DNA of 64,000 nt from Andalucia godoyi And28. Lineage: Eukaryota; Protista; Jakobida. Shown piece after piece: positions 20,608-57,922 of the stretch; position 1 is the first letter of the stretch, and each line of letters starts with the position of its first letter. The position numbers and the translations under genes are program-made. The notes beneath the pieces were generated by a model. It was not told where the DNA came from and did not search any database. It worked only from the letters and a program-made list of their open reading frames with translations. Location: the NCBI GenBank assembly GCA_009859145.1, contig VRVR01000037.1, positions 181,885 to 245,884 of the forward strand, given 5' to 3'.

Positions 20608-23100
20608 ATGGGGGCATTCACATATGCTCCGTATTGGTTGTTGGCGGCTTCGTGTTGCGTTGCGGTGGGCTTCGTGTCGGGATGCGGGATCACGACGCAC
20701 ACGGCCATCTCGCATCGAGCACTTCGACAATGGTCGTCTGGATACGCGCCGTTGGTCCGTGAAGAGCTAGCATCTCTTGAGGCTGGGTCGCCGTACCCGG
20801 ATACGTACTACGACGGCTTGTGCATGCATGGGGAATTACACCAGGTGTCTGAAGACGTGCATTGGCTTCCGTACACGATTACTGCCGTGGAGTATATGCG
20901 AGATTTGTATCCACCCCCGCTTGCGTCGCATGGTGTGGATGCACGGCGGCTGTTTTCGTTTCTTCTTGGAGTAGCGTCGCATCAGATGGCAGATGTTGTG
21001 TGGCATGCGTCGCTTACATCGGTGCCAAACGGACTGATTGACGCAGATGCGTTCACGGATTACTTTAGCGATCGCCAGGATGCGCACTCGTCTGTGGACA
21101 CCGGCGGCGATGTGCTGATTGACTATGAAACAGTCGATACACGCGCCATGTACGTGACGGAATGGTACACTCCGTACGCCCATCTGCAAAACATCTTTGA
21201 AAAGTATGCGCAGGACTGGAAATCCGAGATTGAGAGAAATGCCACGGTTGCGGTGATCAAGATATGCACGGACATCATGTGGATTGGAAGACAGGCGGAT
21301 GCTGCATTTTTGGAAATCGAGTACAATAAGCTCGCTGCCAACAACTCTTGGTTTCTCGAGTCCTTCTATGATTATTATCTCGGGGGTATGCATAACATGG
21401 TGGCGGAGACAGTGCGCTACTGGGACTGGATCGTGGAAATGTACGAGCACGGAACGCAGGCGTGTGCGTATCCAAACAACAATCCCTTTTACATGTCCTG
21501 CCCATCCTCCTCGCGAAGGAGTCTGGACAGCGGGAGGGACAGTCACAACAGGAATCAGAGTAATCGCAGTGCTATTGATGATGCTGCGAATGGAGCAGGA
21601 AAAGGAGAGGCACTTCGGGCTGTGGGGAGTAATGTATCGTATGCAGACGTCGGCCATGTGATCATCCACCAGGACGTGAATGGCGACGGGGTGGGCGACG
21701 TGGTGATTGGGGTCCCGAATTCGCTGGACCACGGCTGTCTTTCGCGTGGATTCGCGTTTGTAAAGTTTGGTAGCAGCAGCCACGGCTTCGAAGGTTTGTC
21801 GGACGTCGTGACGGTGGAGGACTGGGCCGATGCAGCACTTGCACCACCACCACCACCTCCACCATCGCCCCAACCCCCTCCACGTTCTCCGACTGGATCT
21901 CATTGCGATGCAAACCGATTTGGCTGGGCGATGGCAACCGTAGACTTGAACAAGGACGGGATTCCAGATCTAGTAGTTGGTGCACCATCCGAGGGCTTCG
22001 CAGCCAATGTCTTCACCGGCGCCGTGTACTTGTACTCTGTTTCCACTCGCGGCGGTCGAGATTTGACACCGTATCTGAGGATTTCAGGTGTCAGTGCGCA
22101 CGACTCGGCAGGATTTCGGGTTGTCGGTGGTGATTTGGACGGCGATGGGTTTGCCGATCTTGTTATTTCGTCTCCGTACGCACAGCTTTCCGACGATGCT
22201 GCACAGACTGGAGCCGTGTGGATATTCCTGTCTTCGCGAATGACCTTTTCCAGCGGAGGAGAACAGACGCTGAACGATGCGCACATTGTGATTCGTGGTT
22301 CTAGCCTCCATGGCAGGTTTGGGTACTTTACCCAAATTGTGGAGCCCCGCGACGGTTCGAGCTCGTTTCTTTCGTCCGCTCTGCTGCTGGTTGGTTCTCC
22401 GAATGCACTTCGTCCCGATGCTGGAGCGCACGTGCAAGGTACCGGAAGCATCCATGGCTACTTCATCGACAAGACCACCACTTCTGGCTCTCTAGCTCCG
22501 CTGTTCATCATCGACGGCGCTCAATCCCTTGATGCCCTCGGTCATTCCTTTGATGTCTCCTACGCACCTTACCCGCTCATGTTTGCTTCCATCCCCACGC
22601 ACTCTCTCTCGGATTCCAGTTTCGTCGGTGGCGTGTTCGCATTTGATCTCTCTGCGCTGGTCTCTATTTCGGTGGCTGCAGCACTTAAACCGTGTCGATT
22701 CGATGCGACCGATCCAAGAATCGTGTTCGTATCCATGGTCGGAGATCGCCAGTTCGGCAGACTCGGGTACACCGTTACGGCAAGCGATGACTTGCAGACG
22801 CTGTTCCTGTCTGCGCCGCTGGCTCGTCCTATTCTTGTATCTTCCGGACGAGTGTATGCGGTGCCCTATGCCCAGATTTCCGCAAAGCACCAGTCGCAGC
22901 CGCAGTCTCAGCCACTCGTCGTGGGAGATTCGACCTTTTCTCACCGCACCGGATCCCCTCTCGACCACTTCGGCACACATGCATGCCTCGTCAACGACGG
23001 CGCGTCATCGTCACTTTGGATTGCGGCTTCGTTAGGCGCAATCAACCAGGACCACGCTCCACACACCGGGCTCATCCATGTTCTTCCAGCCCCATTTTGA
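20608..23100 (+). CDS. GPLD1: Glycosylphosphatidylinositol-specific phospholipase D
   Basis: Signal peptide then CGITTHTAISHRA, GSPYPDTYY...EDVHW, GVASHQMADVVWH and HSSVDTGGDV, matching the GPLD1 catalytic domain; followed by FG-GAP repeats (DLNKDGIPDLVVGAP, DLDGDGFADLVISSP). Confidence 0.92.
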   Translation: MGAFTYAPYWLLAASCCVAVGFVSGCGITTHTAISHRALRQWSSGYAPLVREELASLEAGSPYPDTYYDGLCMHGELHQVSEDVHWLPYTITAVEYMRDLYPPPLASHGVDARRLFSFLLGVASHQMADVVWHASLTSVPNGLIDADAFTDYFSDRQDAHSSVDTGGDVLIDYETVDTRAMYVTEWYTPYAHLQNIFEKYAQDWKSEIERNATVAVIKICTDIMWIGRQADAAFLEIEYNKLAANNSWFLESFYDYYLGGMHNMVAETVRYWDWIVEMYEHGTQACAYPNNNPFYMSCPSSSRRSLDSGRDSHNRNQSNRSAIDDAANGAGKGEALRAVGSNVSYADVGHVIIHQDVNGDGVGDVVIGVPNSLDHGCLSRGFAFVKFGSSSHGFEGLSDVVTVEDWADAALAPPPPPPPSPQPPPRSPTGSHCDANRFGWAMATVDLNKDGIPDLVVGAPSEGFAANVFTGAVYLYSVSTRGGRDLTPYLRISGVSAHDSAGFRVVGGDLDGDGFADLVISSPYAQLSDDAAQTGAVWIFLSSRMTFSSGGEQTLNDAHIVIRGSSLHGRFGYFTQIVEPRDGSSSFLSSALLLVGSPNALRPDAGAHVQGTGSIHGYFIDKTTTSGSLAPLFIIDGAQSLDALGHSFDVSYAPYPLMFASIPTHSLSDSSFVGGVFAFDLSALVSISVAAALKPCRFDATDPRIVFVSMVGDRQFGRLGYTVTASDDLQTLFLSAPLARPILVSSGRVYAVPYAQISAKHQSQPQSQPLVVGDSTFSHRTGSPLDHFGTHACLVNDGASSSLWIAASLGAINQDHAPHTGLIHVLPAPF

Positions 23101-26814: not shown

Positions 26815-28536
26815 TTAGAGCATGTTGAATCCAAACGCAAAGTGCCATTCCTTGGAGCGGTCGCCAGGATGCAGCGTGCTTGCAACAGGCATGGACCAGT
26901 TGAGCTCGATAGCACCGATGGGAGTGGGCAGCGCAAAGCCGACGCCCCCGACTAGACGGGAAGAGCGAGCCGCCTCGCAAGCCGCAGTTTTCCAAGACGA
27001 CCCCAGAGACAACGGCGCGGCAGAGAGCGACACAGCTTGCCCAAACACATGTCCGCGGATTCGCAGCGAATGGCAAATGTCGCCTGGAAGCAAGAAATGA
27101 GCACCGGCAGTCAGCACAGCTCCCAGCGAGGCTCCAGGAAGCCCGGTAGCCCCCACATCTTCTTGCAGCGCAAGGCCACGCACACGGTGTGCAAGGGCAA
27201 TTCGCTCACACAGCGGCACACGAGAGACGAATTCGTTTGCTTGTGGAACGTACACAGAAGCAGAAGAAGCAGCAGGAGACGACGAGGGTGAAGAAAGCGA
27301 GGAAGTAGAAAGCGAGGCGACGACACCCAACGAGGCGTCGAGAGAAAGAGAGACGCCGGGCCAGATGTTGAGCCATGATTGCGAATGAACACTGGTCTTT
27401 GCAAACGGGGTGGAAAACTCACGAGAGTGCGTGTGCTGCGCAATCGGAACACCAAGCTCACAGTCGGTTCGCACGGCGAATCCAGAAAAGGGAACAACGG
27501 GGTCATCGCGGCCATCTGACATGAACGAGTGCAGCAGTGACAGCTTTGTGTACTCGCCACACTCCTGTCGCAGAGCCAGCGGTGCGTCCGCGGAGACTTC
27601 CGAAACGTCTCTGCGGACAACTTCCACGGTGTAAGCATGCTTGGTGCAGTCCAAAAGGAACTCAGAGGCCCTTGCAAGCAGCGATGCAGAAGGAAGCAGC
27701 TTTCCCTTTGCCGCCTTTTCGGCCAGCTTGTACGACCTGCGCGCAGAAAACACACCTCCAAAAGGATCGATCCCAACAGAAGCCGACAGATCTCTCTGCA
27801 CAAACGAGTTCTTCGCCGACGACACAAAAGGCGAATGAATAGTTCCGTGTCCAATCGCAACTTTCCATGGCAGCGTCAGCAGTCCGCTCCGTGCCGCATC
27901 AGGATCATTCGCAAACGACAGCGAGAACTGGTTCGATTTATACTGCCCCATCGACCCATCCAGAAGCATGCGCTCTCCTTGACCAAGCAAGTTATGTGTC
28001 CCTGCCGAAACCGAAACCGCACGTTCTCCACGACCGGAAACCGACGTTTCTACTTTCAGTCTCGACGGCGCGGCCTCCTTCACCTGCACACTCACCGCCG
28101 CCTCCATCGTTCCCGGGACAACCACCGCAGCCGCCGTCTTCAACCCGCTACTCGGAGCAACCAGCACGTCAACTGCCGAAAACAGCGACTTTTGCCGGAA
28201 CGCATTCTGTACATTCACCATGTCAAATACCAGCGTCTCAAGGCTGTTCCGTCCCGCGTCCCCGCCCTCTGACGCGCCACCAGCATCTGCTGCATTAGAA
28301 TACTTCTGCAGCGGCGCGAGCAGAGTCTCCAGAATCACCCCGGATGTCCGCGACACTCCAGAAACCGCAATCCCAGACAAGACGACCTTGTCGCGCCGAT
28401 GTGCCGCAACCGCACGAACTACGCGAGAAGCACGCGCGCTCTCCTCCGCGACCTCGCCACCACCGCTGTCGTAGTCGGAACCTCTCGATGAAAACAAAGG
28501 TGCAATCGTCGGATCAACTGCTGCGTGCCGCTCCAT
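26815..28536 (-). CDS. SAMM50: Mitochondrial outer-membrane beta-barrel assembly protein Sam50 (Omp85 family)
   Basis: POTRA-like N-terminus (VVLSGIAVSGVSRT...FRQKSLFSAVDV); HNLLGQGE; DGRDDPVVPFSG; C-terminal GVGFALPTPIGAIELNWSMP...GDRSKEWHFAFG. Confidence 0.9.
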   Translation of the reverse strand: MERHAAVDPTIAPLFSSRGSDYDSGGGEVAEESARASRVVRAVAAHRRDKVVLSGIAVSGVSRTSGVILETLLAPLQKYSNAADAGGASEGGDAGRNSLETLVFDMVNVQNAFRQKSLFSAVDVLVAPSSGLKTAAAVVVPGTMEAAVSVQVKEAAPSRLKVETSVSGRGERAVSVSAGTHNLLGQGERMLLDGSMGQYKSNQFSLSFANDPDAARSGLLTLPWKVAIGHGTIHSPFVSSAKNSFVQRDLSASVGIDPFGGVFSARRSYKLAEKAAKGKLLPSASLLARASEFLLDCTKHAYTVEVVRRDVSEVSADAPLALRQECGEYTKLSLLHSFMSDGRDDPVVPFSGFAVRTDCELGVPIAQHTHSREFSTPFAKTSVHSQSWLNIWPGVSLSLDASLGVVASLSTSSLSSPSSSPAASSASVYVPQANEFVSRVPLCERIALAHRVRGLALQEDVGATGLPGASLGAVLTAGAHFLLPGDICHSLRIRGHVFGQAVSLSAAPLSLGSSWKTAACEAARSSRLVGGVGFALPTPIGAIELNWSMPVASTLHPGDRSKEWHFAFGFNML

Positions 28537-51754: not shown

Positions 51755-52660
51755 TTATTTCTTCATTGCAAAGTAGACGACGATTCCTACGACGGCGCAG
51801 ACGAGTATCATGCCGATGATGCAGCACATTTTCTTTCTTGCCTTTTTCTGGAGCTCTCTGGATTTCTTGAGTTCGTCGATACCCTTTTCGACAGATGCGC
51901 TTGTCTTTGAAACATTGTTTTCGATGAGGTCGATGTCTTTTGACTGTTCATTGACCATAACCGCCATATCGACGTACATGGATGACAGCTCGTTGAGATC
52001 TTCTTCAAGTCTCATAATGTCGTTATTTTGCTCGCGGATCATCTGGTGCTCAAGAGCCACCGTCGATCTGTCGAATCGGGAGTTCCTGTCCTGGACCTGC
52101 ACTTCAATGTCGTTCGGATCCTCAATGTCGCGACTGTCTCCAAAGTCATTCCTCCGGGCACCACCACCAGACAAGTGGGACTCCGGCCCAGACTTTGCCT
52201 GTGACGACGACATGGTCGCCACCAGCTCCTTTTCCTTGCGCTGGGCATTGCGATTCACACTCTCAAACTTCTGCAACACCGTATTAAACTGCGCTCGCAC
52301 CTTGTCATACTGCGCCTTTTCCGACGCACTGACCTGGAATGCCTGCAGCCCATTCGAAATTTCCTTTGCAAGCCCCTGTGTACCTTGTCTCTCCTTCTCA
52401 AACAGCTTCCGAAACTCCCGATTGTCATTCGGTCCACCAAGCGTATTGCACATGTTTTCGATCTTCACAACCTTGCCTGAAAACTTTTGCACATTCCGCG
52501 AGATGTCGTCCAGCGATCCACTTCCTCCACTCCCACCGGCGTTTCCATTGGCGTTGGTGCTCCCATTCGCATTGCCATTGGCATTTCCTGGAGCTGCAGA
52601 CTGCGGTCGTGCGCGTTGTGGTCGAGCGCCGTACGTCGATGTATCACCCCACCCAGACAT
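51755..52660 (-). CDS. Qa-SNARE syntaxin, STX7/STX12/Pep12 group
   Basis: Habc region (LGGPNDNREFR...KVRAQFNTVLQKF); SNARE motif IREQNNDIMRLEEDLNELSSMYVDMAVMVNEQSKDIDLIENNV; C-terminal TM anchor. Confidence 0.93.
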   Translation of the reverse strand: MSGWGDTSTYGARPQRARPQSAAPGNANGNANGSTNANGNAGGSGGSGSLDDISRNVQKFSGKVVKIENMCNTLGGPNDNREFRKLFEKERQGTQGLAKEISNGLQAFQVSASEKAQYDKVRAQFNTVLQKFESVNRNAQRKEKELVATMSSSQAKSGPESHLSGGGARRNDFGDSRDIEDPNDIEVQVQDRNSRFDRSTVALEHQMIREQNNDIMRLEEDLNELSSMYVDMAVMVNEQSKDIDLIENNVSKTSASVEKGIDELKKSRELQKKARKKMCCIIGMILVCAVVGIVVYFAMKK

Positions 52661-53212
52661 GTTTCTCCGCCGTCCCTCTTCTTACCAACAAACAAGCAAA
52701 CCAAACAAGTTTTAAAAAATAAAATAAAAATTTAAAAAGAAGAAGAAGAAGAAGGAAAAAAATAATAATATAATAAACCGAGACGAACGAGAGGCGGAGA
52801 AATAGTGGCTCAAATCACAAAGAAACATAAAAGATCCAAACGCAAAGCCAAAAAGCCCTTTTGGAGTAAGGATGATCACACACACATAAACACGGGCGGA
52901 GTGCAGCGGAGAGAATCGCGACACCCTACTCTTCAAAGCGATGGAGAGGAACGGCAGACAACTGCAAAAGGTTTTTTGATTGCAAGGGAAGTGGGGGCAG
53001 GAGCTGAGCAGCATCACTTGATGCATGATTCCTCTGCAGCAGCCGTCCTTTCTCCGACACCTTTGCTCCTTCAGCCGAGTGTGTGTGCGTGTGTGCGTGC
53101 GTGTGTATTTTATATATTCGCTGACGGCGTGTGTGCGGTTTGTTCAATCCCATTGCCTCAACTTACTTTTTCCACTGACACTTGCTGTGCTGTAGAACCC
53201 GAGAAAGACACG

Positions 53213-53629
53213 ATGATGCTCCGCCGGTTGTTTTCGACGTCATCCAAGGCTGTAGAAGCAGTGATTGCAAAGAACGCGCCTGCCGCAATTGGACCGTACT
53301 CGGCTGCAGTGAAGGCGAATGGGTTTGTGTTTGTGTCTGGGCAGCTGCCGATTGTTCCGTCGACAGGATCGTTTGTGCATCCCACGGACGTTGCGCAGCA
53401 GGCTGACCAGTGTCTCAAGAACCTTGGCGAGATTCTGGTTGCGGGCGGTTCGTCGTACTCCAAGGTCGTCAAGGCTACGGTATACCTTGTCGATATGGAG
53501 GACTTTGCAGCAGTCAACGAGGTGTATGCAAAGTACTTTGGCGATGTCAAGCCCGCCCGTGCTTGTTTTGCAGTCAAGGAACTTCCCAAGAAGGCTCGAG
53601 TCGAAATCGAATGCATTGCTGTCGCATAA
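53213..53629 (+). CDS. RIDA: RidA/YjgF/UK114 enamine-imine deaminase, probably mitochondrial
   Basis: APAAIGPYSAAV...FVSGQLP...QCLKNL...VVKATVYL...FAAVNEVYAKYF...PARACFAVKELPKKARVEIE; presequence-like MMLRRLFSTSS. Confidence 0.95.
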   Translation: MMLRRLFSTSSKAVEAVIAKNAPAAIGPYSAAVKANGFVFVSGQLPIVPSTGSFVHPTDVAQQADQCLKNLGEILVAGGSSYSKVVKATVYLVDMEDFAAVNEVYAKYFGDVKPARACFAVKELPKKARVEIECIAVA

Positions 53630-53892
53630 AAGGTTCTTCCAAGGAGAAGCGGGAAAAATAAATCAAGCCAAAACTATCAAAATAAACAATGCAAACAAAT
53701 AATAACCAAGATACATGAAATGAAAAACAGGAAGAACCAGAAGAACAAGAAGAACAAGAATGAGGAGAGGAGAAAAGAAAACAAGCAAATAGTAAAGAAT
53801 AATCAATCATAAATTCTCTTCTTTCATTCCGTGCGAGAGGCAGAGTAGTGGGGAAAACACGCCCAGTGAAGATGCACTTTTGGAATCGATCT

Positions 53893-56166
53893 TTAAGAAA
53901 TTGGGAGCGTGAAAATCAAGACCGTGGAGATGAGCATCAGAATGGGGTAGACGATAATCATCAGCCGCGAGACCTGCAGGACACAGACCTTGTTTTCGTC
54001 CCAGCGAATCGGGAAGATGGAGCCGACAAACCACAACTGCTTTTTAGGTGGTGACTTGGCAGAGGGGAATGAAGCAACGGCCAGCGGCACAGCAGCAGGG
54101 GCAGGGGCAGGGGCAGGGGCAGGGGCAGGGGCAGGCTTCGCATCCGGTTTTGGTCGCAGCGGAGCAGATTCATCCTCAAAACGGTATCGAACCCACTTCT
54201 GAATGACAACGGTTAGGATAGAATACAGGAACGCCATCAGGATGAACAGCATGATCCTCGTGACGTACGAAACAGGAGGCGAGGTATTTGCAAATGTGAC
54301 GGTAATGGTTGCAGTCAAAAGCAAAGCGGCGCAGGCAACATTGATGCGTCCGTCGGACTTTGTAGGCAGAACAAACGTGGTCCACAGCAGAATGTGCACA
54401 ATCAGCAGTGGGAGCAGAACCACAACAGCATTGAACGTGGGCCGCCGATCCGCGCTGACGTTCACTTTGAGATTGCGGAAGTTCTTGTAGGGGCCTGATG
54501 AATACGTCCCAGTGCTCGTGCGATAATCGTAAAAGCTGAATCCGCCGTTGGGGATGTTCTCCACAAAATGCCGCAGATCCATGGTTACTGGTCCAGTAAA
54601 GACCAAGTTGGATTCATCGTACTGGCTTGACCGGATCTCAAACGGCAGTGTCTGCGTGTCAAACGGGAAATTGCGCACGTTGATATCTGCCGAGAAGGAC
54701 TGCACATATCGCTGAACGTAGGTCACAATTCCACGGTTGGTGACGGTGGCGGACTCGTCGAATGGATTCGGCTTTTCACGGACGTTCTGGAAAGTGACCA
54801 TGGGACGCCAGATGCCATTCAGAACATTCGACGTGAGGAATGTAAGGTTTGCAAGTCCTGATCCTTTGAAACGAGAATCGAACCACTGGGTAATGATGGT
54901 AATGTCAGACTTGTGCAATGACGCCTTTTCCTGAACTTCAAGCACGTTGTTGACGTACACAATGCAGCTCACCACAGTTGGTTTCGTCTGGTTTATTCCG
55001 GACGCCCGGACGGAAATTCTGCTGCCGGAGGATTTGTATTCCGTCTGAAGTTCGGCTGGGAGGAAATCCGCAAAGTCGAGACCAAGACCCTTATGAAACG
55101 GAACGAACTGGCCGTATCTGGTTTCTGCGTCTTCTTCCTCATGCTCGTTGAATGCAGTAATTTGGCTGAGCAAGGAGTTGGATTCCTCATCAGCATCTCC
55201 CGGGCGATCGGCCGGATCGTACAGCAATGGCGGGAACTTCTGGCCAGACAAGACAATCGAGATGTTCACGGATGCCCGCAGCGACTGTGCGTACTGCGTC
55301 GTTCCTGGGAAGGTTCCAACTGGGAGGGAACCCACGGCGGCCACAATTCCGTTGTTCGCATCGTAGATGACGGATCCCTGCAGGAAGAGGGATGAGTTGG
55401 AAGCGACGTCCAGAACGGAAACAGATTCTCCTGTGCCGACCGTGTAGATGAAAACCACTTCTGTTGCACCATTCTCGGCAGCAGAAGGAATGAATGATCC
55501 CTTGTAGTATGCGATTCCGCCGGAATTGAGAACAATGTAAGGTGGTGACGTGGTGGAAGCAATCGAAACGATCACTTTCGACGAGAATCGGAGTACAAGG
55601 GGGATTACTGCGCCAACCGCGTACTTACCAGAACCGACAGTCGTGGAAATCTGGAGGATTGCAGGTGCCTTGGTGGACACTCCTGTTTGCGGGAGAATGG
55701 TCTCCATGCCGACAAGAGAGCTGTTGAAAACGTAGCCCGCAGGAGCAGGACAACCAGACAGTAACAGAGCATCTGCCGAGGGCAGAGCAACCGCAATCTG
55801 ATTCGTGAAAAGGTTGTACTGTGTAATGGTGAACATGAAAGGAATGCACGTGCTGTCGCACACCGTGTCGTCTCCGAATGCCACTTCGTCGATGAATGTC
55901 TGTCGAGGAACATAGATGGCGCTTTGGTTTACAGAACCGATGGCGATCACCAGCCTCGGGTTGCACGAGCCGGTGAAGGCGCTGTCGTCGAAACTCGCGT
56001 CAAAAGTCACTGTCAGGTACACGACGTCGTTCAGACCAGCAATGTTGTTCGAGAATGCTGAATAGACCTGAACTGGGGTCGGGAACTGCGGTGCAATCGT
56101 CGTCTGCGCAAGAACTGTTGACACCAATGCCAACAAGGCAATGACAAGAATGCGGCCGTCTCCCAT
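53893..56166 (-). CDS. Pentameric ligand-gated ion channel without the Cys-loop disulfide, with two N-terminal Ig-like repeats
   Basis: Signal peptide; IWRPMVTFQN; Pro-loop ADINVRNFPFDTQTL with no cysteines; M1 VLLPLLIV; M2 RINVACAALLL...SPPVSY with 9' Leu and 23' Pro; PA-repeat loop; M4. Confidence 0.9.
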   Translation of the reverse strand: MGDGRILVIALLALVSTVLAQTTIAPQFPTPVQVYSAFSNNIAGLNDVVYLTVTFDASFDDSAFTGSCNPRLVIAIGSVNQSAIYVPRQTFIDEVAFGDDTVCDSTCIPFMFTITQYNLFTNQIAVALPSADALLLSGCPAPAGYVFNSSLVGMETILPQTGVSTKAPAILQISTTVGSGKYAVGAVIPLVLRFSSKVIVSIASTTSPPYIVLNSGGIAYYKGSFIPSAAENGATEVVFIYTVGTGESVSVLDVASNSSLFLQGSVIYDANNGIVAAVGSLPVGTFPGTTQYAQSLRASVNISIVLSGQKFPPLLYDPADRPGDADEESNSLLSQITAFNEHEEEDAETRYGQFVPFHKGLGLDFADFLPAELQTEYKSSGSRISVRASGINQTKPTVVSCIVYVNNVLEVQEKASLHKSDITIITQWFDSRFKGSGLANLTFLTSNVLNGIWRPMVTFQNVREKPNPFDESATVTNRGIVTYVQRYVQSFSADINVRNFPFDTQTLPFEIRSSQYDESNLVFTGPVTMDLRHFVENIPNGGFSFYDYRTSTGTYSSGPYKNFRNLKVNVSADRRPTFNAVVVLLPLLIVHILLWTTFVLPTKSDGRINVACAALLLTATITVTFANTSPPVSYVTRIMLFILMAFLYSILTVVIQKWVRYRFEDESAPLRPKPDAKPAPAPAPAPAPAPAAVPLAVASFPSAKSPPKKQLWFVGSIFPIRWDENKVCVLQVSRLMIIVYPILMLISTVLIFTLPIS

Positions 56167-57922
56167 GCTTCGTCGAACCCACTACTTAATTTAAATGAAA
56201 AAAAAAAAAGAAGAGAAGGGAAGGAAAAAAAAAATTAATAACCAAAGTATTCATGATAAACAAAATTTGGCCGTTGGAGGGGAGTGTGCTATAAGGCAAG
56301 AACCCATATTGCATAAGAAAGCTCCAAGCCCGCCGACGCAGGACCGCTACTCAATTCGGCGGGTTAGGGGTTTTCGCTTGGTTTATATTTTACGTTTTGG
56401 GCCATATTCATGGTAGTCTCTATTTTGTTTTGTTTTGTTTTGTTTTTGCAAGTTACTGGGTCGCCTTTTCGCATCTTTGAGTTCCTTGGAAGACACGGAT
56501 ATTCCTGATTTCATGATGTCGTTGCCGCTATCGAGCCAAGTTGTGAATCACGCGGCTCTTGCACTTCCGCCGTTTCTGCTGTGCTCGCAAGATCAGTGAC
56601 CTGCAAGAGGCGCGCGCGAGAAGTGCAGCTGGAAGTGATGGGAGGCATTTTTCTAGTGAAGAATCGAGGTTTGCAGGAGTCTTATTATTCCACTCTGTGA
56701 TGGTCAAATGGACGTCGCGCACGCTGGTTCGCCTCGCGTGACGGAAACGCTGCGCTAAACATTCGTCTTTTTTGGGATGCAGAACTTTGCCCGGTCACAA
56801 ATGGTTGCGTTGGGGAGGAGGATGCGCCAGACCGGACGGATGACCATGAAGACATCGATGATGAAGAAGTAGGCGGAGAAGCACAAATCACAGTATTTTG
56901 ATTCCATCTGCTGCTTGTTTCGTGTTCGGCTGAATGGTACGTACTTAGGTGGAACGATATGAGAATCCAGACTCGTATAGTAAAAAGAGAGGAACTGGCG
57001 GAAAACAGTTCGTGGCCGCTCACCAAAACATGAATCATGATACAGTAGATCATCGGCTGAGCGACATGTTTCGCTTCTTTATTTGAGGGGCTGAGGGACG
57101 AGCACAAACTCTTTAATGCAGATTGCTCTGCATTAAAGGATCGTCGCAACCACGAGTTTCTTGGTTCTCGGCATCGTCGGGCATGCTCGGTTTCAGTTTG
57201 GTGGAAAGATCCCTCTTTGGAGCCATGCGATGTTTTGTCCTTGATGAAAGGTGCTGCTTGAGGGTTCGATAGGAAAAAGCAAGCGGGAGATAATAGAAAA
57301 GGGAAAAAAGTGAAAAAGAATGAAAGAAATTCTAGACTTGACTACGGTAAGAATAGTCAAAAGCTGTCAGCTGCTGTCACTTATTGCGATATGATGAAGC
57401 AATCTCAAGCGCACGCAAACAAGAAAACACTGCCACGCGCCACGCGCCGTGCACATGCTTTTGCTATGTTAACAACTCCGTCACACGATGCCCGATTCGT
57501 TTCGCCCCATTTTGATCATGAAATCCCTATGTAAACACGCCGCCGCGTTGCATTATGCATGTTGCTGGGTTGCAACAATTGATTACGGGTGATCAGCGAT
57601 GATTATCCGTGGTTAGCGTACAATGTACGCGCTCTAATAAACAAGACTCGCAACAGCTGGACTCTTTGAAAGGGAAACGTCCGAGATGACTGCGGATGTC
57701 TAGGCATTGTTTTCATCCGCTTTGGTGCGAAGACGAGCAGAGGGTTTGATTGTCTATGCAGACGCGGCAAACCAGCTGTCGAATGGGTTTTTTATTTTCC
57801 CCCTCCCACAAAAGGAGCTGCAGCAGTGGTTCGCAGTCTTGTTCATCTTAAATTGATGTTCTTGCATTTTCTTTCTCTTTCTCCTCTCCTCTGATTGTCC
57901 CCGATATTGAAAACTGTACAGA

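Follow-up and report, generated by a model that had tools for sequence, protein, structure and literature searches.

An immunoglobulin-like head on a Pro-loop ligand-gated ion channel subunit of a jakobid protist, and evidence for a conserved subfamily in distant eukaryotes

The stretch of DNA analysed here, 64,000 nucleotides of contig VRVR01000037.1 from the jakobid Andalucia godoyi And28 (hereafter the window), contains on its minus strand a gene whose 757-residue product joins two immunoglobulin (Ig)-like domains, A and B, to a ligand-gated ion channel of the pentameric class (pLGIC). The order of the domains, the homology of both halves to known proteins, the fold and the recurrence of the arrangement in distant protists have been established. 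The protein is probably a subunit of a Pro-loop channel belonging to a conserved eukaryotic subfamily that appears to be undescribed; the pore is predicted to be cation-selective, and the A-B head is best viewed as a tethered accessory module. From the N-terminus, the coding sequence specifies a signal peptide, Ig-like domain A, Ig-like domain B, the motif KFPPxxYDP, a linker, the pLGIC extracellular domain, the transmembrane helices M1–M3, a short intracellular loop and the final helix M4. The individual features are listed below in this order, with the supporting evidence in brackets; AF2 denotes AlphaFold2, HMM a hidden Markov model and pLDDT the predicted local distance difference test score.

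53893..56166, minus strand: whole coding sequence, 757 residues (a single ATG-initiated open reading frame without internal stop)
56104..56166, minus strand: signal peptide, residues 1–21, MGDGRILVIALLALVSTVLAQ (hydropathy peak at residues 6–24; AF2 helix at residues 4–21)
55687..56085, minus strand: domain A, residues 28–160, a diverged Ig-like beta-sandwich (hhalign of family profiles, AF2)
55252..55686, minus strand: domain B, residues 161–305, an Ig-like beta-sandwich at the edge of Pfam Big_5 (BLASTP, HMM, hhalign, AF2)
55213..55245, minus strand: family motif G-Q-K-F-P-P-L-L-Y-D-P, residues 308–318 (family alignment)
54988..55212, minus strand: acidic linker, predicted to be disordered, residues 319–393 (AF2 pLDDT of 28–47 over residues 335–393)
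54436..54987, minus strand: pLGIC extracellular (ligand-binding) domain, residues 394–577 (Pfam PF02931, AF2, Foldseek, invariant residues)
54646–54690, minus strand: Pro-loop ADINVRNFPFDTQTL, residues 493–507, in which A493 and L507 replace the two Cys-loop cysteines
54184..54435, minus strand: M1 (residues 578–599, with P586), M2 (residues 604–628), the M2–M3 segment SPPVSY and M3 (residues 637–661)
within the preceding segment: M2 sequence SDGRINVACAALLL, S-D-G-R-I-N-V-A-C-A-A-L-L-L, with D605 at position -2', G606 at -1', R607 at 0', L616 at 9' and V623 at 16'
53965..54183, minus strand: short M3–M4 intracellular loop, residues 662–734, containing a (Pro-Ala)n run
53908..53964, minus strand: M4, residues 735–753 (hydropathy; in the alignment it corresponds to the family's C-terminal helix)

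A preliminary description of the locus, made from the sequence alone, had read the C-terminal half as a complete Cys-less pLGIC, and database comparison bears this out. The Pfam model Neur_chan_LBD (PF02931) matches residues 392–524 with an E-value of 1.8e-16 (60.6 bits against a cut-off of 26). When sequences in the PDB were searched using phmmer, the best match was the GABA-A gamma2 subunit (6e-20), which aligned from residue 394 to 695 and was collinear through M3; further matches included ELIC, at about 1e-16, and glycine receptors. All four transmembrane helices are evident, with hydropathy peaks for M1 to M4 at residues 581–599, 608–626, 638–656 and 735–753, and AF2 placed helices at residues 578–599, 604–628 and 637–661. 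The full-length AF2 model, a monomer generated from an 11-sequence family alignment, is confident over residues 394–661 (pLDDT of 77–94 in blocks of 10 residues), and begins with the helix of the signal peptide (residues 4–21; cleavage site putative), which is followed by a low-confidence break. Comparison of the model with chains of GABA-A and glycine receptors using Foldseek gave E-values of about 1e-21 and target-normalised template modelling (TM) scores of 0.60–0.70, and the structures superpose with a root-mean-square deviation (rmsd) of 3–4 Å over about 275 residues, as expected of a pLGIC fold. In the family alignment W428, W453-x-P455, F500-P501-F-D503, the pre-M1 residue R574, P586 in M1 and R607 at the 0' position are all invariant. 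Given the Pfam and PDB matches, the superposition of the model and the invariance of these superfamily-defining residues, the channel fold and the family assignment are secure, and the signal peptide, the Pro-loop with its Ala and Leu, the M1 proline, the M2 sequence and PPVSY were each found where the preliminary description had placed them.

Because A493 and L507 stand at the cysteine positions, the protein falls in the Cys-less subset of the superfamily and not among the metazoan-type Cys-loop receptors. The term 'Cys-less' is appropriate for the loop only, as the whole protein contains 7 cysteines. The extracellular domain retains aromatic residues and an R512–S513 pair at the positions of loops B and C. 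Family membership suggests that the protein would form a pentamer and conduct ions. It was also observed that the Pro-Ala run of the M3–M4 loop is encoded by a perfect hexamer microsatellite, (GCAGGG) x 6.8, at 54095–54135 within the coding sequence, the length of which is likely to vary between strains.

The register of the pore was defined by a gapless alignment to GABA-A gamma2 that extends from the 0' Arg to the Pro-x-V-S-Y of the M2–M3 segment. A leucine gate at 9' had been proposed in the preliminary description: L616 does occupy this position, but leucine is not conserved there in the family. The residues that recur in M2 are L8', L/I12' and F/Y16' (alignment columns for residues 602–635), and these hint at an atypical hydrophobic gate. 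Since the 9' leucine is not conserved and F/Y16' recurs, the hydrophobic gate of the family may be positioned further up the pore. At 16' most family members, like ELIC with its Phe, carry a bulky hydrophobic residue. With regard to selectivity, the glycine at -1' had previously been taken to mean that cation selectivity was not implied, a view that now appears too cautious. Asp605 occupies the -2' position, an acidic residue (D/E) is found there in 10/14 family members, and the selectivity-filter Glu of GLIC also sits at -2' (PMC5760087), such that a cation-selective pore dependent on Asp605 is the better guess.

The N-terminal half of the protein was traced through domain B. A first protein search, in which the full-length sequence was compared by a word-indexed method, returned only five bacterial Calx-beta proteins of 1,190–1,315 residues, each of which contains four tandem 117-residue repeats that align with residues 163–279 of the window protein. 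The best BLASTP comparison of domain B with bacterial repeats reached 1e-11, with 32–35% identity to the four tandem copies, and an HMM constructed from 19 bacterial repeats matched residues 165–277 (E-value of 1.5e-13, HMM positions 2–104 of 117). Across 31 bacterial repeats identity to domain B is 31–43%, and alignment of the domain B profile to the bacterial repeats using hhalign gave 98.2% (E-value of 4.9e-14). The BLASTP and HMM values lead to the conclusion, drawn at the level of sequence, that domain B is truly homologous to the tandem repeats of giant bacterial surface proteins, and the claim in the preliminary description that the second repeat (residues 168–285) matches such a repeat therefore stands. 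Indeed domain B shares the whole repeat, the common pattern being G-x-Y-x-x-G-x-x-I-x-I-x-V-x-F-S ... P-x-L-x-L-N-S-G-G-x-A-x-Y ... L-x-F-x-Y-x-V ... L-D.

Domain A is more remote. The two N-terminal repeats had been regarded as copies of one another, and this holds only when the family is considered: BLAST detected no pairwise similarity between domains A and B of the window protein, but their family profiles are related (hhalign 96.5%, E-value of 1e-9). The domain A profile also aligns with the bacterial repeats (93.4%, E-value of 2.5e-7), and domain A gives a sub-threshold match, in the same register, to the HMM of 19 bacterial repeats. Domain A is thus best described as a diverged copy that is detectable by profile comparison only. 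It contains a pair of cysteines, of which C139 is present in 12/12 and C68 in 10/12 of the relatives that have the region, and these would be expected to form a C68–C139 disulfide. In comparison with the repeats of giant bacterial surface proteins, which form a stalk of 4–26 copies, the window protein has only two, mutually diverged copies; a Cys pair has been acquired by domain A, and both domains are attached to a channel.

An AF2 model of the head (residues 22–325, 14-sequence alignment) has a mean pLDDT of 75.9 and consists of two all-beta domains. In the AF2 models domain A has six strands, with blocks mostly at pLDDT 65–91 and lower values at residues 142–153, and domain B has a core at pLDDT 72–92 that drops to <60 near its C-terminal end. 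Foldseek matched the head model to two-domain Ig proteins (Fab chains, ICAM-1 and a cohesin dyad) with E-values of 4e-5 to 5e-4 and a match probability mostly of 0.77–0.99, which supports a generic Ig-like fold for the modelled head and nothing more specific. Together with the single open reading frame, the profile and Foldseek matches uphold the earlier proposal that two Ig-like domains are fused to the channel in one reading frame.

The naming of the repeat needs some care. Residues 1–390 alone gave no match in Pfam or NCBIfam (E <= 10) or in PDB sequences, the head profile gave none at E <= 10 against PDB sequences, and a profile search of the PDB using the bacterial repeat alignment returned insignificant matches to filamin repeats only. 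Amongst the 31 bacterial repeats, nine reach Big_5 (PF13205) and three reach Big_12 (PF19078). The link between the window head and Big_5 is therefore transitive, since the head has no Pfam match of its own and only 9/31 of its bacterial relatives reach that family. The bacterial relatives that bear the repeat are hypothetical proteins; carriers include a 'PA14 domain-containing protein' from a Clostridia metagenome-assembled genome, with 26 copies, and a Planctomycetota protein, and an unnamed metagenome protein with the repeat has a below-cut-off dockerin match. These findings justify the label 'repeat of large extracellular bacterial proteins', and 'adhesin' is a plausible label for the family.

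The distribution of the architecture was determined by an exhaustive HMMER scan of 1.84 billion representatives (50% clustering), which gave 2,826 proteins at E <= 1e-3. HMMs of the channel core and of the two head domains, A and B, were then used to re-scan the best 150 of the 2,826, to which the five Calx-beta proteins were added, as was one cluster member. Within this re-scanned set, about 100 are repeat-only proteins with 4–26 copies of B and 56 are channel proteins, at least 14 of which have exactly the order A-B-[pLGIC]. The preliminary description had treated the architecture as singular, and this no longer applies: the same fusion was found in Colponema, Cyanophora, Andalucia, an MMETSP transcript and environmental contigs. 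The protein P0009 of Colponema vietnamica aligns with the window protein as a single HMMER stretch (query 4–660 to 5–657) at 35% identity, and both P0009 and the MMETSP member are single transcripts recorded as 'complete'. Among the remaining members, at least four genes belong to Cyanophora paradoxa, and others are from Andalucia godoyi and from environmental assemblies of JGI and Logan; in one of these the A-B-[pLGIC] fusion is a single open reading frame on a 24-kb eukaryotic metagenome contig. The Cyanophora proteins have the order A-B-A-B-[pLGIC] or more; duplicated or expanded heads are seen in C. paradoxa P0013, P0015, P0020, P0028 and P0048, the largest being 2,611 residues, with N-terminal regions that are Cys-rich. 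The family was found solely through the exhaustive HMMER scan. In the word-indexed search with the full protein the Pro-Ala run may have crowded out candidates; when the run was removed nothing was returned, and when the family alignment was used only P0002 was recovered.

A neighbour-joining tree of 50 channel cores (no support values) places all of the head-bearing cores together in one clade, with several head-less entries among them. Most of these head-less entries begin right at the channel domain and are probably N-truncated fragments. The head-bearing cluster is separate both from proteins of prokaryote-like size (~330 residues) and from Cys-loop proteins. The collinear presence of A, B, KFPPxxYDP and a Pro-loop channel within one clade indicates, as judged from the sequences, that A-B-[pLGIC] is a conserved eukaryotic subfamily.

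The possibility that the fusion is an artefact, in which adjacent genes, or a gene and a pseudogene, are read as one frame, or in which an unexpressed bacterial contaminant or recent transfer has been captured, was considered and is very improbable. Two findings could be cited for it: the exact window protein has no record in the large collections searched, and the closest relative, P0006 (47% identity; L001 1–1326, JGI metagenome 3300042934), has no head in its record. The missing head of P0006 is explained by truncation at the contig end, where its frame remains open as far as base 1, and its candidacy as a head-less orthologue was ruled out. Moreover, the window protein is collinear over its whole length with the Colponema protein and other full-length proteins, including 'complete' transcripts, and a 757-codon open reading frame with a signal peptide and four transmembrane helices in the right order is no chance product. 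The P0006 contig is compact and apparently intron-free, like the window, and probably derives from a related, unsampled protist. No synteny was found between the window and the P0006 contig, and two metagenome scans for related loci gave no confirmed relative.

The genomic setting also argues against an artefact, as eukaryotic housekeeping genes flank the channel gene and guanine-plus-cytosine (GC) content is uniform across the region. The 64 kb around the gene are eukaryotic nuclear DNA of ~52% GC, densely packed with genes that have few introns and lie on both strands. A kinetoplastid origin was considered and rejected, as genes alternate between the strands and the literature reports no pLGICs in kinetoplastids. 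Neighbours encode La, ESF1, a SAP-RING protein, a GPI-PLD-like protein, a Sam50-like Omp85 protein, Kelch and Myb proteins and a syntaxin/SNARE, along with a tetratricopeptide repeat (TPR) protein that weakly resembles APC3 and a DUF747 protein (a eukaryotic membrane-protein family). From this gene content the host is a eukaryotic microbe, in agreement with the protist host named in the preliminary description. A search of the window for other copies of the protein's domains found none, and tRNA and Rfam scans of the whole 64 kb found nothing.

Several further observations were made in the window. The intergenic DNA that flanks the channel gene (53640–53890 and 56170–56300) is rich in T tracts, CT tracts and short repeats, and (GAAGAACAA) x 4 and (TTTTG) x 5 lie at 53722–53760 and 56423–56446, respectively. 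The syntaxin/SNARE gene (51755–52660, minus strand) encodes Syntaxin_2 and SNARE domains and an Asn/Gly-rich N-terminus, and an exact look-up of its protein, as of the channel protein, gave no record; a 301-residue open reading frame that mirrors it on the opposite strand (51810–52715, plus strand) is almost certainly spurious. The end of an open reading frame at 52805–53629 (plus strand) resembles, by eye, RidA/YjgF-family proteins. Read from its first GTG it has a long upstream extension, and an internal start, MMLRRLFSTSS..., looks by eye like a mitochondrial presequence. At 20608–23100 (plus strand) a zinc phospholipase C domain is followed by FG-GAP repeats, presumably the layout of GPI-specific phospholipase D, which we take to be unusual in a protist genome. 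The Omp85-superfamily protein encoded at 26815–28536 (minus strand) is probably mitochondrial Sam50 or plastid Toc75-like.

The role of the head can be considered from the way in which it is joined to the channel. Directly after domain B lies the KFPPxxYDP motif, in which P312 and P313 are invariant and Y316 and D317 are present in 12/13 and 11/13 family members, respectively. Linker lengths, calculated from the motif and the HMM coordinates, range from 11 to 82 residues across the family, the longest being in the window protein. Because the tether is long, variable and modelled as disordered, rigid mechanical or allosteric coupling between head and channel is a poor fit. The variable and disordered linker, the varying number of A-B pairs and the coupling elements kept by the canonical extracellular domain together favour conventional gating with an accessory head, and this is the explanation that we consider probable. 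Under this explanation, five subunits would assemble so that five A-B heads crown the ligand-binding domain, and the pore would be cation-conducting, with the Asp605 ring at -2' as the selecting element. The pore would close at hydrophobic rings, L9' in the window protein and F/Y16' in most relatives, and a small ligand, an ion or pH would drive gating through the canonical extracellular domain. The A-B head, held by a flexible tether that lies just past KFPPxxYDP, would act as an accessory module that binds an extracellular macromolecule (cell coat, glycan or partner protein) and thereby positions or modulates the channel.

The variation in the number of A-B pairs (A-B, A-B-A-B or more) is also what would be seen in stalk-like proteins, and the head could be purely structural, serving as an aid to assembly or trafficking or as a protective spacer in a thick coat, neither binding a partner nor influencing gating. 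A role as rigid spacers is common for Ig-like repeats, and searches of the head revealed neither a ligand-binding signature nor a Pfam family. The fixed A-B order, the conserved Cys pair of domain A and the near-invariant junction motif suggest tighter constraints than those on a spacer, and the N-terminal domain of DeCLIC, the only one characterised in the superfamily, influences gating kinetics (PMC9897478). On balance a purely structural head is considered unlikely.

At the opposite extreme, the head could be the primary sensor, such that binding of a surface, prey, substrate or matrix pulls or reorients it and opens the pore, giving a contact- or adhesion-gated pLGIC. The repeat family of domain B is typical of very large extracellular bacterial proteins (containing PA14, Calx-beta or dockerin domains), the head has been conserved across deep eukaryotic splits and is for this reason taken to have a selected function, and the KFPPxxYDP motif could serve as a joint that transmits force or movement. 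Several of the hosts are phagotrophs or predators: Andalucia is a bacterivore, and colponemids are called predatory in the title of a preprint. Set against this, a tether of 11–82 residues that is disordered in the window model transmits conformational change poorly, and the intact canonical extracellular domain, with its conserved coupling elements, suggests conventional gating. In addition, Cyanophora, a phototroph, has several members, and the Ig-like repeats of giant bacterial adhesins are mostly spacers and not binding tips. A primary-sensor head is distinctly unlikely. A wider form of the idea, in which an ancient pan-eukaryotic pLGIC family senses macromolecular or surface cues by means of a bacterial-type Ig-like ectodomain and converts contact directly into cation flux, is about as unlikely; if true, it would represent a contact-gated member of the neurotransmitter-receptor superfamily that is older than animal synapses.

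A number of points weigh against the favoured explanation of a conventionally gated, cation-selective channel with an accessory head. The Pfam transmembrane model PF02932 falls under its cut-off (16.7 versus 28.1 bits), and the 'complete' transcript records belong to the relatives from Colponema and MMETSP and not to the window gene. The 9' leucine of the window protein lacks conservation in the family and the gate may differ from that of textbook channels. The TM-scores of the head model are low (0.15–0.29), perhaps owing to an inter-domain angle unlike that of the targets. Linkers of only 11–15 residues are found in P0014 and P0037, and the near-invariant KFPPxxYDP motif combined with the shortest linkers would allow tight docking of domain B and direct coupling. 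Pentamer formation, the ligand, ion selectivity and the role of the head are all features that we infer.

Comparison with known systems helps to place the subfamily. The protist Cys-less pLGICs inventoried previously (Jaiteh, Taly and Henin 2016, PMC4795631) are similar in their eukaryotic microbial hosts, the replacement of the loop cysteines (here by Ala and Leu), the invariant loop proline, the four transmembrane helices and the uncharacterised function. That inventory dropped whatever terminal sequence, N or C, failed to align with the channel domains, and it did not discuss N-terminal domains (PMC4795631), which is why the A-B head and the subfamily are not described in it. With GLIC and ELIC the window protein shares the Cys-less loop and the short intracellular loop, and the acid at -2' is as in GLIC; GLIC and ELIC differ in that they have no head, and in the tree the family groups in a clade of its own, away from the ~330-residue proteins of prokaryote-like size. 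Prokaryotic fusions of pLGICs to PBP-I or MCP-N + Cache modules (Tasneem et al. 2004, PMC549065) similarly carry an extra module between the signal peptide and the ligand-binding domain, but these modules are prokaryotic small-molecule sensors, whereas the module described here is a eukaryotic Ig-like pair with no small-molecule-binding signature.

The best functional analogy is provided by DeCLIC from Desulfofustis (PMC9897478, PMC12664993), in which two beta-rich extracellular domains, NTD1 and NTD2, lie N-terminal to a Pro-loop channel. The DeCLIC head is dynamic and affects gating kinetics (PMC9897478), and the window head is likewise predicted to be mobile. DeCLIC differs in being bacterial, and its lobes are jelly-rolls for which a resemblance to Ca-binding domains from a protease and a collagenase has been noted. 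Homology between the window head and the DeCLIC lobes was considered and rejected: the head profile has no PDB match and DeCLIC is absent from the top 50 folds of the head model. In the Foldseek comparison of the full-length model, DeCLIC was found at rank 37, with a poor superposition (rmsd of 23.7).

The DeCLIC literature states that such N-terminal domains have not been observed in eukaryotic pLGICs, and the literature searched contained no account of protist pLGICs with Ig-like or N-terminal extensions, consistent with the earlier suggestion that the architecture is uncharacterised. The sequences of the family were already public as hypothetical proteins, one of which is named 'gamma-aminobutyric acid receptor subunit beta'; the novelty lies in recognising the architecture and the family and not in a new kind of molecule. 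As head-bearing pLGICs are found in a jakobid, a colponemid and a glaucophyte, the statement that eukaryotic pLGICs are without such domains needs correcting. The pLGICs are among the best-studied receptors, and the A-B-[pLGIC] proteins offer a second independent natural system, beside DeCLIC, for the modulation of gating by an accessory ectodomain. They also raise an evolutionary question, namely whether the architecture is an ancient eukaryotic invention or was put together from a surface-protein repeat that bacteria contributed through gene transfer, and they provide a handle on the role of such channels in cells without nervous systems.

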